Virus record (IMG/VR): IMGVR_UViG_3300030616_000016
Span: 62,001 to 126,000 of that record
Direction: 5' to 3' (one strand)
DNA: 64,000 bases
In this document: in pieces, positions 30,460 to 53,756 of the stretch
How positions within the stretch are numbered: the stretch's first letter is position 1
How the letters are laid out: each line of letters opens with the position of its first letter
Made by a program: the position numbers and the translations under genes
Notes under the pieces: model-generated
Database searches by the model: none
What the model saw: only the letters and a program-made list of their open reading frames with translations
Told to the model about the DNA's origin: nothing

Positions 30460-31626
30460 CTAATTCATCGAAAATTGCGTTCCATACTGGCTACGTCTTA
30501 CATCTTCTCCAAAGGCTTTAGGTTCCCCTTGCCCAGGGGTACAAAATGCAAAATTCAAAATATTACTAGATGCAAGGGCATCTCTATCGTGTTTGGCACC
30601 ACAAGTGCAAGTCCAATATCTGTCACTTAGCTTAAGATTATTATTTATAGCGCCGCACTGGTTACACATCTTGCTGGATGGTTCAAATCTTCCTATAGTC
30701 AAAACATGCTTTCCATACCAACCTGCCTTATACTCAAGAAAGGTACGAAAAGTATACCATCCAACATCAGAGATAGCCTTGGCCAAACAATGATTCTTCA
30801 CCATTCCAGAAACGTTTAAATCCTCAAGACACACTGCTTGGTTCTCGTCAATGAGCCTTTTGGACAATTTATGCAAAAAATCTTTACGTTGATTAGAAAT
30901 CTTCTCATGTATCAACGCTACCTTCCTACGAGCCTTGTTTCTATTTGAAGAACCTTTCTTCTTCTTTGATAATTGTTTTTGCTTTCTTGCCAATCTTCTT
31001 TCAAGTTTCTTTAGGTATCTTGGATTATCTATTTTCTCGCCTGTTGATAGTGTTGCAAAATGTTTTAATCCAACGTCAACACCTACACTATTATCTCGTT
31101 CAGGATTACATTTGATAGGTAATTCTTCTCCATTGTCAACCAAAATAGAAGCAAAGTATTTCCCAGAAGGAGCCATGAATATAGTTACAGTTTTAATATT
31201 GCCTTCAAATTGTCTATGGAATTTGCATTTGATGCCATCACGGAATTTCATTACATATAGCCTATTATTATCAAAATCCACATTACTTCCTTGTGGAAAT
31301 TGACAAGATTGCTTTTTGAATTTCTTCTTAAATTGAGGATATCTTGCCTGTTTCTTAAAAAACCGCCGGAAAGCATTGTCAAGGTTTCTAAAGGCCATTT
31401 GCAAAGATTGACTATTAACTTCCTTCAGCCAACCATGCTCAGATTTCATATGTTTCAATTGCTTTATCAAATCAAAACAGGAAGGAGATTTCCCCGTTTT
31501 TTGATAAGACTCTGTTTTCTTTTGGAGTCCCAAATTGTATATGAACCGTACACAACCAAAATGCTTCACAAGAAGCTCCTGTTGTTTTTTGTTGGGGTAT
31601 ATTTTGTATTTATATGCTCGTATCAT
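30460..31626 (-). CDS. tnpB: TnpB RNA-guided endonuclease, apparently intact
   Basis: MIRAYKYKIYP HTH; RuvC motifs GVDVGLK, LEDL, DRDALAS; CNQCG/CTCG zinc ribbon. Confidence 0.95.
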   Translation of the reverse strand: MIRAYKYKIYPNKKQQELLVKHFGCVRFIYNLGLQKKTESYQKTGKSPSCFDLIKQLKHMKSEHGWLKEVNSQSLQMAFRNLDNAFRRFFKKQARYPQFKKKFKKQSCQFPQGSNVDFDNNRLYVMKFRDGIKCKFHRQFEGNIKTVTIFMAPSGKYFASILVDNGEELPIKCNPERDNSVGVDVGLKHFATLSTGEKIDNPRYLKKLERRLARKQKQLSKKKKGSSNRNKARRKVALIHEKISNQRKDFLHKLSKRLIDENQAVCLEDLNVSGMVKNHCLAKAISDVGWYTFRTFLEYKAGWYGKHVLTIGRFEPSSKMCNQCGAINNNLKLSDRYWTCTCGAKHDRDALASSNILNFAFCTPGQGEPKAFGEDVRRSQYGTQFSMN

Positions 31627-48974: not shown

Positions 48975-49158
48975 TACCTTGCTCCTTGAAATCTTTATTG
49001 GTTATCATGTTACCATTTGCTCTATCTTTTGGAGGTACATAATTATGGTTTAGGGCCTCATTTTTTGTAATGCCATGCTCCAATTCTACTCTATTCCAAT
49101 CTATAAGATCTGATATGCTACTTAGAAAACGTACTGAATCATTTTTATCTTGCGACAT
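48964..49158 (-). CDS. Small hypothetical protein
   Basis: ORF track, GGAG RBS. Confidence 0.5.
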   Translation of the reverse strand: MSQDKNDSVRFLSSISDLIDWNRVELEHGITKNEALNHNYVPPKDRANGNMITNKDFKEQGNAQ

Positions 49159-49174
49159 CTTTATCTCCGATAAT

Positions 49175-49534
49175 AATTCATTCTATACATATGGTATATT
49201 TATTCTTCGTGATTCATTCGTTTGGCATGGTATTTCAATTTGCTTGATTCGCTAATGAGTAGTGGTGTTTCAATATTTTTGGCTCATTTTAATACTTTGT
49301 TCTATTCTTTCATATGATTCATTCCTTGGTCCTGGTATTTTAGGGCTGATGGCTCATTCAGTACAATTGGTATTTTCGTGTTCATAATTCATTCTTGTTG
49401 TTTGGTATTTCCACCAAGATGACTCATTCTAATAAAGTGGTTGTTCAAATAAAGTGATTCATTCTTCCACGTTGATGTATTCAATTGCATAGTTCATTCT
49501 TTTCTTGTGATATTTCGTGTAGATTGATTCATTC
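49175..49534 (-). repeat. TIGR-like dual-repeat array 1: 10 units, 35-nt period (one of 36 nt)
   Basis: Plus-strand motif GATTCATTC-like at 49175, 49211, 49246, 49281, 49316, 49351, 49386, 49421, 49456, 49491 and 49526, with a GGTATTTY-like motif 18 nt after each; the intervening segments (9 nt, one of 10) are all different. Confidence 0.92.
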
Positions 49535-50170
49535 ATGAAAACTATGATATTCACTCCAGAATAACTTTTCTCTGTAATCCTTACATGCTTTCATGTATTC
49601 TTCTAAAGTCTGTAGAAATGATTTCTGTTCTTTTCTATTGTATGTTATAGGCATAGGAGGAAATCTTTTTATATATTCCTCTTGCTTTTTCTTTTGTATC
49701 TTCTTACGCCTATTTTTTCTTGCAAGTTTTCTTCTTGCTTTCATGCGTTGTGTTTTATTAAGTTGTACAATTTCACTTGTAATTGTTCTTCTATGAATAA
49801 TCCACGATTTCCTAAGTTCTTGTTTAAATTCCTTAAAGAAATCCCATTCTTCTATAGCTCTGATTTTTCTTTTGAGACGCCTTCTTATTTTAATCCTTGA
49901 TTTTCTAATGTGATTAAGTGTGAATATTTTACTACTTATATCTTTGGGCTCATGTTTATCGAATCCTGGTATCCAGTTATATTCACACCATAGGGTAAGA
50001 TCTTTTGTAATTTGTTGAACATGCTCGTAATCTGGTTTTACATAATATGTTCTATATTCTGGAAGATAATGATTGTTTCTTTGTTCTTCAACGAGTTTGT
50101 TTGCTACAATAATTACGCAGCCTTTTAGTGATTTTATTAGATGTTCTCTAACAGATTTTGTTCGATTCAT
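49529..50170 (-). CDS. Highly basic hypothetical protein whose stop codon lies in the first repeat of array 1
   Basis: 213 aa, K/R-rich; TTT CAT GAA TGA overlaps GAATGAATC. Confidence 0.6.
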   Translation of the reverse strand: MNRTKSVREHLIKSLKGCVIIVANKLVEEQRNNHYLPEYRTYYVKPDYEHVQQITKDLTLWCEYNWIPGFDKHEPKDISSKIFTLNHIRKSRIKIRRRLKRKIRAIEEWDFFKEFKQELRKSWIIHRRTITSEIVQLNKTQRMKARRKLARKNRRKKIQKKKQEEYIKRFPPMPITYNRKEQKSFLQTLEEYMKACKDYREKLFWSEYHSFHE

Positions 50171-50197
50171 TTAGTTTATCCTTATATACAATATGCT

Positions 50198-50590
50198 TTA
50201 GAACAAAAACCTTACGTTTGGATACTCCTTGAGACATTCAAGACCGGGTTTGATTACTTCCTGGAAGATATTATATCTGTTAGCTAGCCCGCCACCTAAT
50301 CTGCTAATTAAGAAGATATAATCATCATATTCTTCTATTCTTCTCTCTAGCTTGGCTAGTTCTGTTTGGAATTTAGGCTTATATTCTTCTGGCTTATAAA
50401 AGCTACCGTCATTGTTATTAGGCGCCTTCTTTGTTACGAATCCATATGTATTTGGCATATCACGCAGCTTAGCAGCTCCGCCATATCCCTTATGTAATAG
50501 ATTGTCGCCAAATACAAATATTTCATATCTATGTCTCTTTAAATAGGCCCTTGTTATTTTTGTCTCACCGCCGCTTCTATTAGATTCCAT
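50198..50590 (-). CDS. Phage protein with FVFGDN...GGAA motif (A1S_2505-like, possible macrodomain-related fold)
   Basis: IFVFGDNLLHKGYGGAAKLR...YGFVTK. Confidence 0.5.
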   Translation of the reverse strand: MESNRSGGETKITRAYLKRHRYEIFVFGDNLLHKGYGGAAKLRDMPNTYGFVTKKAPNNNDGSFYKPEEYKPKFQTELAKLERRIEEYDDYIFLISRLGGGLANRYNIFQEVIKPGLECLKEYPNVRFLF

Positions 50591-50609
50591 TTATATCTCC
50601 CTTAATAAA

Positions 50610-50858
50610 TTTGAGCCGCAATTATTACGCAGGATTCAATTGAGAGCAGAGGTAGTTGGTGTCCAATGTCTGTTGGTCAATCCTGCTTACACATCCCAGA
50701 CTTGTTCAAAGTGTGGTTATGTCCACAAGCTCAATCGGAATGGTGAGATATTTAATTGCAGGAATTGTGGCTGCAAAGGGGATGCTGATTTAAATGCATC
50801 TCGAAATATCTTGAATCTTGGATTGGCTCAGGAGTCTATAGTCCCTGAAAAAACATAA
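50610..50858 (+). pseudogene. C-terminal remnant of a TnpB gene
   Basis: VNPAYTSQTCSKCG...FNCRNCG...DADLNASRNIL; no N-terminal part. Confidence 0.85.
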
Positions 50859-50890
50859 AAGAATATTCCTCTATAAATATTCTAACTATT

Positions 50891-51476
50891 GGTGTTTTCC
50901 TTTTTGTGATTCATTCATTATAACTGATGTTTCTATAAGTGTGATTCATTCTTTAATAATGGTAATTTAATGGCTTTGATTCATTTTTCCCCAATGGTAT
51001 TTCTTATGTAATTATTCATTCTTTATACTTGATATTGTGACTACATTGATTCATTTGTATGGACTGGTATTTCATATTTAGTGATTCACTCACTTATTTT
51101 GGTATTTCCATGGGTGTGGTTCATTCCGGCATGATGGTACTTCTAGGCAATTAATTCATTCTTATAGTCTGGTACATTGTCCTATCTGATTCATTCCTTC
51201 TTTATGGTATTTCGTGACTGATAATTCATTCTGTTCAGCTGGTATTTTGGAGCTTATGATTCGTTCGCAATTAATGGTACTTTCTGATTTATAACTCATT
51301 TTCTCCGAATGGTATTTCAGATTGAGTGATTCATTTGTTCATGTTGAATTATTGTGCAAAGTGATTCATTCTCGCGACATGGTATTTTGGGGCTAATGAT
51401 TCATTCATAATATATGATATTTTTTGGATAATGATTCGTTCATGTTGCATGGTAATTCTAGGACGCTGACTCGCTC
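50891..51476 (-). repeat. TIGR-like dual-repeat array 2: about 17 units with an exact 35-nt period
   Basis: GATTCATTC-like motif at 50908 and every 35 nt up to 51468 (17 copies); GGTATTTY-like motif at 50891 and every 35 nt up to 51451; unique 9-nt segments between. Confidence 0.95.
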
Positions 51477-51525: not shown

Positions 51526-51554
51526 ACAGGGCAAGCCATTGTAGCTTGCCCTGT
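51526..51554 (-). terminator. 11-bp perfect hairpin between the Nop-domain gene and array 2
   Basis: Minus strand ACAGGGCAAGC-TACAATG-GCTTGCCCTGT followed by TTT. Confidence 0.7.
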
Positions 51555-51569
51555 AATATATTCTTCATA

Positions 51570-52580
51570 TTACCAAGGCCAGTTAGGGACCTCGATCTTA
51601 TGAACATGTTTCAAGTGATCGAATGCATAAGGCTGGAAAGGCGCTTCGACGCCATAATGAGCACGATAAGCAACTTCCCACCAGTGAGACAGGAATATCT
51701 TAGTAGCCCATCTCTTACTTCTCATATGAATCTGACTATTGGGGAGCTTGCCTTCGCGATATATTGCCCTCTGTTTATGACCAGGCACTCTTCGAAGAAC
51801 TTCTCGTGCAATATGCGCATATTCCTTGGCTTCATTCTTACGCGACTCGATAATCTTCCTTTCAACAACAAGATGTCCATAGAGATCTTTTGGATTGTTG
51901 CATGTCATATTGAAAGACTCACCGATTTTCCAGCAGAGTGTTTTCAGTTCTGAATTCCAGGGACGCATTGACAGACCTCTGTAAAGCGTCTTGCCTGTAT
52001 GAACTCCGCCTCCTTTCTGTAATGAGAGACGAAGTGCGGTAGCTGCTTTGATTCCTCCGGCTTCTTGTATCGCATTTGCTACCTTAATAGCATCTTCTTC
52101 AGATACTCTTCTTGTACTATCAGGATTAATACCGGCTTCGTCAACCATGATTTCTCTTGTAACTTTCTTGCCAAGCCAGCGCTTTCCGTCTACAAGACCA
52201 GCATAGCTATAGATATGTCCTGGAGTCTTAGCTTTGTCCATATCTATATGGGCAATAAGACCGGCGCTGATAACAGGGCCAATACCTACAACTGATTGAG
52301 CCCATGTACCAATTTTTGTTGATAATGAGAAATGATTGAGCGCGAGCTTCACCTGATTCTCAAGACGCTCCGCATTCTTAAGAAACCAATCAAGCACTTC
52401 CATTGGAGGGTCGTCTACGCCCTGCTCTGCTGCTCTAAGCTGACCAGCAAGCCTGATTCTCTGGTTCTGCATGGTATAATAACTATCTACCAGATAGCGG
52501 GCTTCCTGACGCGTAATCTTTCTTGACGCGTTTCTTATGTCTTTACCTACTCTTTCAATAATTTCTTCAATAGCCATCAC
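51570..52580 (-). CDS. IS110/Nop-domain protein lacking a RuvC domain (TasA-like RNA-guided DNA binder)
   Basis: Coiled coil YYTMQNQRIRLAGQLR; HhH-like SVVGIGPVISAGLIAHI; IYSYAGL; RPWNSELKTLCWKIGESF; QIHMRSKRWATKIFL; no DEDD N-terminus and no SG serine after YAGL. Confidence 0.8.
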   Translation of the reverse strand: MMAIEEIIERVGKDIRNASRKITRQEARYLVDSYYTMQNQRIRLAGQLRAAEQGVDDPPMEVLDWFLKNAERLENQVKLALNHFSLSTKIGTWAQSVVGIGPVISAGLIAHIDMDKAKTPGHIYSYAGLVDGKRWLGKKVTREIMVDEAGINPDSTRRVSEEDAIKVANAIQEAGGIKAATALRLSLQKGGGVHTGKTLYRGLSMRPWNSELKTLCWKIGESFNMTCNNPKDLYGHLVVERKIIESRKNEAKEYAHIAREVLRRVPGHKQRAIYREGKLPNSQIHMRSKRWATKIFLSHWWEVAYRAHYGVEAPFQPYAFDHLKHVHKIEVPNWPW

Positions 52581-52598: not shown

Positions 52599-53756
52599 TT
52601 AAAGCATGTTTACCATGCTATTATATAGACCCGCATACTCTTGCGGGCCTGAACGTTTGCCTGGGTTATCGGACAATTTAACAGTAGGAACAAAGCCCTC
52701 TCTATTATATGAACAGGCAGTCATTTTAATAACGATATTAAGAGGATCTACTCCAACATCATTAGTGAAATTAGTGCCTATACCATATACTGTTTTGATT
52801 CTTTTGTTTACATATTCTTCTATCTCAAGAACCTTGTCAACATCAAGAGAGTCTGAGAATACAATGGTTTTTGTACTTGGATCTATACCAAGGCTCTCAT
52901 AGTGTTTTATTATTTTGTCAGCAAATTCCATAGGATCGCCTGAATCTTGCCTTACACCATCCCAAAGACTCGCTCTGACATAATCAAATGATCTTAGAAA
53001 CCAATCAGTTGTATAAGTATCAGTAAGCGCTATGCCTAGTTTGCCCTTATATGTCTCTGCCCATTTATCAAGGGCAATAGAAGTAGCCATTTGAGGACCA
53101 AATATGGCGCCGTGGAACATAAACCACTCATGAGCTTGTGTGCCAATTGGTCGCATGTTATGAGTGGTTGCTAATAATACATTACTTGTACCAAGACAGT
53201 ATTGTGAAATTTGTTTTCTTGTAGACATGTCATCCAGAAGTTCATTCTGTACACCAAATGAAAATCTGCGTCTGGTTCCGAATTCTATGAAGTTGACTTT
53301 GTGCTTGATGAGTTTGTCAACCTTGTCTACATTTGTTTTATATCTTTCTTTCCTGAACTTAGGCGCTATACCAAGCTTAAGATAGTATAGCTCGCTAATA
53401 GCCGCTAATAGCGGTACTTCCCATAGTATAGCAGAATACCATGGCCCGCATATTTCTACTTTGAGATCTTCGTCTGTTTGTGTAACACATACTTCATTAG
53501 GATTGAATCGATGATGTCGTAGGTATTCTAGATATGTTGAATCAAAGACTCCAATCTTTCGCATAGCTGTAATACTATCGTCTATAAAGTATGTATGTTG
53601 CATATGATCAATAAACTCATTTAATTCCTTTTGCATACTTTCAGGGAACTCAGTCTTTGTTCTTGACTTGAATTCATATTTTACTAATGCAGATGGATAG
53701 TGTTTAAGTACTGCATTTTGCATGGCGAACTTATAGAAATCATTGTCTGCTGCCAT
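52599..53756 (-). CDS. pncB: Nicotinate phosphoribosyltransferase
   Basis: D.YKFAM, LWEVPLLA, EFGTRRRFS, GTSNV, GTQAHEW, LTDTY, GVRQDSGDP, VFSDSL, GIGT, VKLSDNPGK. Confidence 0.93.
   Translation of the reverse strand: MAADNDFYKFAMQNAVLKHYPSALVKYEFKSRTKTEFPESMQKELNEFIDHMQHTYFIDDSITAMRKIGVFDSTYLEYLRHHRFNPNEVCVTQTDEDLKVEICGPWYSAILWEVPLLAAISELYYLKLGIAPKFRKERYKTNVDKVDKLIKHKVNFIEFGTRRRFSFGVQNELLDDMSTRKQISQYCLGTSNVLLATTHNMRPIGTQAHEWFMFHGAIFGPQMATSIALDKWAETYKGKLGIALTDTYTTDWFLRSFDYVRASLWDGVRQDSGDPMEFADKIIKHYESLGIDPSTKTIVFSDSLDVDKVLEIEEYVNKRIKTVYGIGTNFTNDVGVDPLNIVIKMTACSYNREGFVPTVKLSDNPGKRSGPQEYAGLYNSMVNML

Follow-up and report, generated by a model that had tools for sequence, protein, structure and literature searches.

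The gene at positions 51570-52580 (minus strand) almost certainly encodes a TasA protein, i.e., a nuclease-less member of the TIGR-Tas family, whose wedge loop is expanded to an inserted four-helix domain. Here, positions refer to the window, the whole stretch of 64,000 nucleotides that was analyzed. Taken as a whole, we regard as probable an account in which this protein is a TasA of the dual-repeat type that binds DNA without cleaving it and carries a wedge domain capping the junction at which the target is unwound.

The window comprises bases 62001-126000 of a 231,647-bp IMG/VR virus record that is estimated to be 95% complete. The phage genome of about 232 kb originates from a marine-sediment metagenome, and its genes include a family-B-type DNA polymerase, helicases, and an RNAP-beta-like protein. 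A run search revealed the locus in two marine-sediment DNA metagenome runs only. Neither megablast with the locus nor tblastn with the TasA protein (E ≤ 1e-5) gave a match among the GenBank phages, and the TasA clade of this phage is represented by metagenomic and MAG data only. Relatives of TasA were observed on contigs binned to Acidobacteriota, Gemmatimonadota, Bacillota, Pseudomonadota (e.g., Halomonas sp. NO4), and some archaea. These contigs are probably prophages or co-binned phage contigs; they spread over many phyla and provide no clue to the host of this phage.

The coding sequence of tasA starts either with GTG at 52580 (336 aa) or with ATG at 52577 (335 aa), and a GGAG motif is located 5-8 nt upstream of the start. 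All residue numbers given below count from ATG 52577. The open frame is delimited to 342 codons, i.e., at most six extra codons upstream, and the upstream gene (52599-53756, minus strand), which encodes a protein of the NAPRTase (nicotinate/nicotinamide phosphoribosyltransferase) family (Pfam, 9e-57), ends 19 nt before tasA. Therefore, no N-terminal domain is hidden upstream. The NAPRTase-family gene and tasA may be co-transcribed. In phages, NAD-salvage genes of the NAPRTase family are known to serve in counter-defence or as auxiliary metabolic genes.

Assignment to the Tas proteins is based on sequence profiles and on structure. A word-indexed search yielded 1158 homologues of TasA at E ≤ 1e-3, the best non-self match being 50% identical (E 4.6e-108). 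The sole Pfam match is Transposase_20 (residues 95-141, E 7.7e-05), and PHROG 4285, which is labeled 'transposase' and whose profile has 277 positions, matches TasA end to end (5e-32). When a profile of 94 TasA homologues was searched against the PDB, four matches were obtained: TaTasR (9mty, 4.6e-24), SpTasH (1.3e-09), IS621 (2.9e-06), and ISCro4 (1.4e-05). The profile alignment spans residues 123-322 of TaTasR, 98-304 of SpTasH and 134-241 of IS621, i.e., the coiled-coil and Nop parts only. In good agreement with this, Foldseek ranked 9mty (E 6e-05, probability 1.00) and the 9w0x TasH entries at the top for the AF2 model of TasA, followed by IS621.

The AF2 model (mean pLDDT 94.6, pTM 0.90) is built from helices throughout, without any strand of three or more residues, and because it is entirely helical, the RuvC/RNase H, HNH, and PD-(D/E)xK folds are excluded. 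In the model, the coiled-coil dimerization helices comprise residues 23-51 and 59-85 with the tip at 52-58 (52323-52511, minus strand). They align to TaTasR K109-H168, where the coiled-coil and wedge boundaries of TaTasR follow the methods of 10.64898/2026.09.09.750476. Only 22 residues precede the coiled coil, among them a short helix at 3-18, so that the preliminary description is correct almost to the letter in stating that the protein starts directly with the coiled coil. Its further statement that RuvC/DEDD and HNH motifs are missing holds for DNA nucleases: no RuvC or HNH domain was found by Pfam, in the PDB profile alignment, in the AF2 fold, or in the open frame of 342 codons. A hidden nuclease fold, which had been named there as an observation that would contradict the description, does not occur in the model, which contains helices only. 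The protein thus combines a coiled coil and a Nop-type C-terminal domain with an adjoining array and lacks an N-terminal nuclease, and its description as nuclease-less and TasA-type is confirmed by this solo coiled-coil and Nop architecture beside a dual-repeat TIGR array.

It had also been described that the protein lacks the serine of the IS110 GL.P...SG loop. This is correct, as L135 aligns to that position. By HMM alignment, the IS621/ISCro4 stretch 'FAGLTPRRYESG' corresponds to 'FAGLDPtskW.G' of the family, with PRRYESG facing 'P..kW.G', and L, K, E, G, or I occupies the serine position across the family members. Judging from this alignment, the whole family, and not this gene alone, is devoid of the serine. 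The N-terminal DEDD RuvC-like domain of the IS110 recombinases was not found in TasA by Pfam, profile alignment, or AF2.

Downstream of tasA, two TIGR arrays are located on the tas strand, 1.35 kb apart and co-oriented with the gene. Array 1 (50882-51476, minus strand) consists of 17 units of 35 nt, each composed of an edge repeat GAATGAATCA (10 nt), spacer A (8 nt), a loop repeat RAAATACCA (9 nt), and spacer B (8 nt). A PWM derived from these units scores them at 22-36, while the 99.9th percentile of the window is 2.2. Scanning the whole genome with the PWM revealed array 2 (49174-49534, minus strand), which has the same edge and loop repeats and comprises ten units of 35 nt (from 49534 down to 49184) plus a terminal edge repeat at 49174-49183. 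The next gene after array 2 starts 16 nt beyond it, with ATG at 49158.

Comparable arrangements are frequent among the relatives: of 80 related viral loci, about 55 have arrays of 34-38 nt next to the tas gene and in its orientation. The repeats of these arrays, e.g., GAGCGAGCCA and GAGAGAACCA, read GA......CA or GA......CCA in the tas sense. Both repeats of the present arrays likewise have Box C/D-like ends, starting with RA and ending with CA in the tas sense. When the edge repeats of different loci are compared (GAGCGAGCCA, GAACGAGTCA, GAATGAATCA), position 3 is seen to co-vary with position 8, and position 4 with position 7. Such covariation would follow from pairing between the two halves at the ends of the tigRNA, for which terminal base pairs have been described (PMC12045711).

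Three other readings of this region were considered and dropped. If the array is read on the plus strand, the repeats begin with UG and G-U pairing is conceivable; this was rejected, as the arrays of related loci all read GA...CCA in the tas sense. A T4-type late promoter TATAAATA at 50872, which would drive the plus strand, was discarded, since the strand of the array is settled and the phage has an RNAP-beta-like gene and no T4-like hallmarks. Guides embedded in tasA, as reported for BlTasA, are not apparent either: the best PWM score within the gene is -1.0, compared to at least 22 in the array.

Between tasA and array 1, there is a GC-rich hairpin that folds with 13 bp and precedes UUUU (51526-51554, minus strand; -26.2 kcal/mol, z -4.5). 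This strong hairpin reads terminator-like on both strands, and transcription of the arrays may either proceed through it or start from promoters of their own. Directly after array 1, there is an AT-rich hairpin with a U run (50861-50884, minus strand), which is weak and not significant alone (-7.9 kcal/mol, z -1.6).

The DNA between the arrays contains three open frames. A 72-aa ORF within an open frame of 103 aa (50640-50858, plus strand) is a C-terminal fragment of TnpB (Pfam Cas12f1-like_TNB, 1.7e-18) and converges on array 1. A DUF7831 gene (50198-50590, minus strand) and a 213-aa ORFan (49529-50170, minus strand), which has its stop codon within the first edge repeat of array 2, complete the segment. 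The TnpB fragment is probably the remnant of an insertion that split the array, and it looks as if a single array was divided by an IS605-type insertion that decayed later (49529-50881). Further TnpB sequences occur at approximately 30559-30759 (minus strand) and, just outside the window, at genome positions 126702-126830; one of them is probably full-length (435-aa open frame), and the other is a third TnpB fragment. With TnpB besides TIGR-Tas, the phage holds two unrelated RNA-guided systems.

The term 'no nuclease' needs a qualifier in the case of RNA. SpTasH matures its own pre-tigRNA by means of Y289 and H296, located on a C-terminal loop (PMC13421893), and according to a survey of 2026, the Tyr/His dyad is a mark of dual-repeat systems (10.64898/2026.09.09.750476). 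Aligned to these two residues (chain 21kl) are Y317 and H324 of TasA, on a C-terminal loop at 51606-51629 (minus strand). H324 is conserved in all 94 homologues, and the position of Y317 is Tyr in 84 and Phe in nine of the 94. Based on this alignment and conservation, TasA is probably an RNase for its own guides. The claim that the protein has no nuclease is therefore valid for DNA nucleases, but it overlooked the conserved Y317/H324, a predicted dyad for pre-tigRNA processing that appears to be retained.

The central insertion is the feature that sets this protein apart from the shorter members of its family. Between AGL of the YAGL motif (125-128) and RPWN (205-208) there are 76 residues, compared to about 11 in short-form relatives. 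Thus, approximately 65 residues (135-203) are extra, which agrees well with the roughly 70 that had been announced between YAGL and RPWN. They form a four-helix domain (51969-52175, minus strand) with helices at 136-148, 160-172, 178-188, and 195-202. AF2 predicts it confidently both within the full model (pLDDT 96-98) and alone (pLDDT 88.3, pTM 0.76).

The position of the domain within the Tas fold can be specified by HMM alignment. AGL of the family aligns to A209-G210-Y211 of TaTasR and RPWN to S227-N228-W229-K230, so that the segment from G127 (G210) to N208 (K230), located at 51954-52199 on the minus strand, is equivalent to TaTasR G210-K230, which has been defined as the wedge (10.64898/2026.09.09.750476). 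This region is 82 residues long in TasA and 21 in TaTasR. The extra residues fall between N215 and S227 of TaTasR, within the wedge, and hence the insertion enlarges the wedge loop. The wedge of TaTasR parts the guide-paired strand from the displaced strand (PMC12045711), while in SpTasH the wedge loop helps to close the substrate groove and to dock the HNH domain (PMC13421893). Directly after the insertion follows helix alpha4 (209-224). Its C215-W216 are nearly invariant and align to C237-Y238 of TaTasR, where the aromatic Y238 stacks on the first guide-target pair (10.64898/2026.08.11.744272). The basic residues K212 and K217 accompany W216, and both the aromatic and the basic residues of alpha4 are conserved. 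TasA thus appears to keep the residues (W216, K212/K217) which Tas proteins use at the DNA-unwinding junction.

Pfam assigned no consistent family to the 57 insertion segments found among the relatives, and no significant structural match to the inserted domain was found in the PDB. Resemblances to four-helix bundles of carrier-protein-like or EF-hand-like type were obtained (Foldseek E ≥ 0.47, VIA Z 4-5.5, Atlas TM 0.57-0.67). An acyl or peptidyl carrier protein fold was rejected, since the resemblance is topological only: the residue before helix 2 varies between S, T, and D, and there is no conserved phosphopantetheine serine.

The insertion is not peculiar to this protein. Its presence, as noted in the preliminary description, is verified, but 57 of the 120 best homologues (of 1158) share it, the remaining 63 being devoid of it. 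Short forms read 'AGLDPt..W.kGeKRPWN', while long forms add 40-90 residues after the invariant W134. The insertion segments of the 57 sequences can be aligned with each other and retain length and helix pattern at a mean column identity of 18-23%. A profile of the insertion alone matched 175 cluster representatives among 1.8 billion proteins. Most of these resemble TasA in size and match the profile at the equivalent position, while the minority comprises longer proteins in which several short partial matches occur.

On a tree constructed without the insertion columns, the long and short states require 24 changes by parsimony, at least 12 of which are forced by well-supported branches. One short form (P0043) is 79-81% identical outside the insertion to the long forms P0024 and P0032. 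As the short loop has a conserved motif of its own, exchange between alleles seems more plausible than repeated fresh deletions. The dN/dS of the insertion amounts to 0-0.5 in unsaturated pairs, i.e., 0 over 52 codons in pairs with an insertion dS of 0.03-0.17 and 0.17-0.5 in more distant pairs, and reaches 2-3.5 times the value for the remaining protein. The insertion is thus constrained but evolves fast; the wedge domain is a real, constrained, and facultative module. Both forms adjoin arrays of 34-36 nt period, no link between insertion and array period was found, and no 35-nt periodicity was detected in the insertion DNA. Since short-form relatives use arrays of the same kind, the wedge domain is not needed for the basic mechanism. 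Some long-form relatives (P0262, P0146, P0240) carry a Hint and LAGLIDADG intein. The one of P0262 (about 416 aa) is located exactly at the nearly invariant Cys of LCWKIGESF, which corresponds to C215 of the present protein.

With regard to function, homology makes a programmable DNA binder or repressor the best reading of TasA, and RNA-guided DNA binding without cleavage is likely. Other TasA proteins bind or repress under RNA guidance or serve as activator scaffolds, in each case without cleavage (10.64898/2026.09.09.750476, 10.64898/2026.08.11.744272). MbTasA represses transcription under RNA guidance (10.64898/2026.09.09.750476), while PlTasA binds its targets under RNA guidance, as determined by cryo-EM, and a fusion of FpTasA to VPR serves as an activator (10.64898/2026.08.11.744272). 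MbTasA and PlTasA, however, belong to the stem-loop class and not to the dual-repeat class, for which the evidence from FpTasA so far comprises binding of 36-nt tigRNAs and the VPR activator fusion only.

In the mechanism that we infer, TasA would dimerize via its coiled coil, by homology with TaTasR, SpTasH, and PlTasA. At its own metal-independent Tyr/His site (Y317/H324), it would cut array transcripts to tigRNAs of approximately 35 nt, one of which would be held per dimer. The two 8-nt spacers are expected to pair with opposite strands of a 16-bp target and thereby to unwind it. As there is no DNA-nuclease fold, the expected outcome is stable sequence-specific binding rather than cleavage, and bound TasA might block transcription or replication of host or rival-element DNA. 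The part played by the wedge region is read from the alignment to other structures, and its location at the strand-separation point of the wedge loop points to a role in handling DNA or the R-loop. Here, W216 of alpha4 together with K212/K217 would stack on the first guide-target base pair and pry the duplex open, and the four-helix domain preceding alpha4 would enlarge the cap over the displaced strand and the flanking duplex at each junction. The domain could thus tune R-loop stability or residence time in a protein in which a DNA-gripping nuclease domain is absent. An enlarged cap at the unwinding junction is a tentative assignment, for which the position and the conserved junction residues speak.

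Concerning the targets, the phage genome (231,647 bp) was searched with the 27 spacer pairs in both tandem arrangements with gaps of 0-2, allowing at most two mismatches for array 1 and at most one for array 2. The hits did not exceed those of mispaired-spacer controls, and consequently, self-regulation of phage genes is without support.

The proposal of the preliminary description that the insertion recruits a separate effector found no backing in the gene neighborhood. Among 75 loci with known insertion state, no gene family is enriched beside long-form tasA; the recurrent 'families' consist solely of ORFs that overlap tas or the arrays. The local neighbors of tasA are the NAPRTase-family gene, DUF7831, and ORFans, i.e., ORFans or metabolic genes, with no effector candidate among them. 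These observations bear on the idea that the wedge domain is a docking platform which recruits a nuclease, a host factor or a phage protein, in which case TasA would contribute the targeting to a system of two parts. The HNH domain of the partner protomer in SpTasH docks onto the wedge loop and a neighboring beta-hairpin (PMC13421893), so that the insertion sits where the effector domain docks in a nuclease-bearing relative. Moreover, the wedge domain evolves faster than the core, and its presence switches often on the tree. Interaction surfaces often evolve fast. Given the neighborhoods and an inserted fold that matches no known adaptor, we nevertheless consider a docking platform unlikely, even though a partner might be encoded elsewhere or by the host. 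Similarly doubtful is the extension of this idea to a swappable adaptor, which would enable an otherwise bare RNA-guided binder to recruit a host or phage factor or would turn it into a much longer-lived roadblock. If it were true, the repeated gain and loss among phages would reflect an arms race over the outcome at the bound target, and long-form and short-form TasA would be functionally distinct effectors.

The scattered occurrence on the tree, with its 24 changes and at least 12 forced ones, also fits the view that a permissive surface loop merely tolerates the insertion as a largely neutral decoration without a specific role, spread and lost via recombination among phage tasA alleles. The high identity of P0043 to its long-form relatives outside the insertion, the same kinds of arrays for both forms, and the low column identity within the insertion (18-23%) point in the same direction. 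On the other hand, a confidently predicted fold is retained, the 57 sequences agree in length and helix pattern, dN/dS is below 1, and the strand-separation point is not an inert surface, which together render a neutral decoration improbable. Finally, tasA might be regarded as a decayed IS110-family transposase next to unrelated repeats, given the Transposase_20 match, the label of PHROG 4285, and relatives which some sources name 'transposase'. This is extremely improbable: the DEDD/RuvC domain is missing and L135 occupies the serine position, hundreds of loci, most of them with co-oriented arrays, encode the short or the long form as a conserved protein of full length, and the best relatives in structure and sequence are Tas proteins and not IS621. 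We therefore retain the reading of a non-cleaving, dual-repeat TasA with a wedge domain at the unwinding junction.

TasA is the commonest and least understood Tas effector, and it already serves as a compact programmable DNA binder in the activator and repressor preprints of 2026. The wedge domain occurs in about half of one large clade and is cleanly absent in relatives of approximately 80% identity, and this provides natural matched pairs. Such long and short pairs are suited to study how the junction controls affinity, dwell time, and mismatch tolerance, and the wedge loop represents a permissive site for engineered fusions.

Within the TIGR-Tas family, described in 2025 (Faure et al. 2025, PMC12045711), the closest counterparts are the dual-repeat TasA proteins, e.g., FpTasA of Flavonifractor plautii (PMC12045711), which likewise is a phage-borne, solo coiled-coil and Nop protein without an N-terminal nuclease. 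Alternating edge and loop repeats, two short spacers per unit, and the C-terminal Tyr/His loop are shared with these systems. In contrast to FpTasA-type systems, the unit found here has 35 nt (10+8+9+8) instead of 36 nt, and there are two arrays 1.35 kb apart. TaTasR (9mty) and SpTasH (9w03, 9w04, 21kl) share the coiled coil, the GIGP helix-hairpin, the AGL...RPWN frame, and the C-terminal Y/H loop, and the aromatic residue of alpha4 is common to all three (W216 in TasA, Y238 in TaTasR, W203 in SpTasH). They differ in their N-terminal RuvC or HNH domains, in DNA cleavage, and in wedge loops of only about 20 residues. PlTasA and MbTasA are nuclease-less like the present TasA, and PlTasA has accessory elements around the unwinding junction, one of which is a hairpin located where the wedge lies. 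The accessory elements of these two proteins, however, are hairpins, whereas a four-helix domain is found here.

More distantly, IS110/IS621 (8wt6) comprises a coiled coil and a Transposase_20 (Nop-like) RNA-binding region homologous to TasA (E 2.9e-06), and the wedge site corresponds to the catalytic-serine loop of IS621. Unlike IS621, TasA has no DEDD RuvC domain, no serine (L135), and no bridge RNA, and is accompanied by arrays of short guides instead. An inserted wedge domain in dual-repeat systems is not described in the accessible literature, which calls their Nop core compact. This TasA is thus a modest variant within the known TIGR-Tas systems, whose general picture is unchanged, while its wedge domain qualifies the published view of an invariant compact Nop core in dual-repeat Tas proteins.
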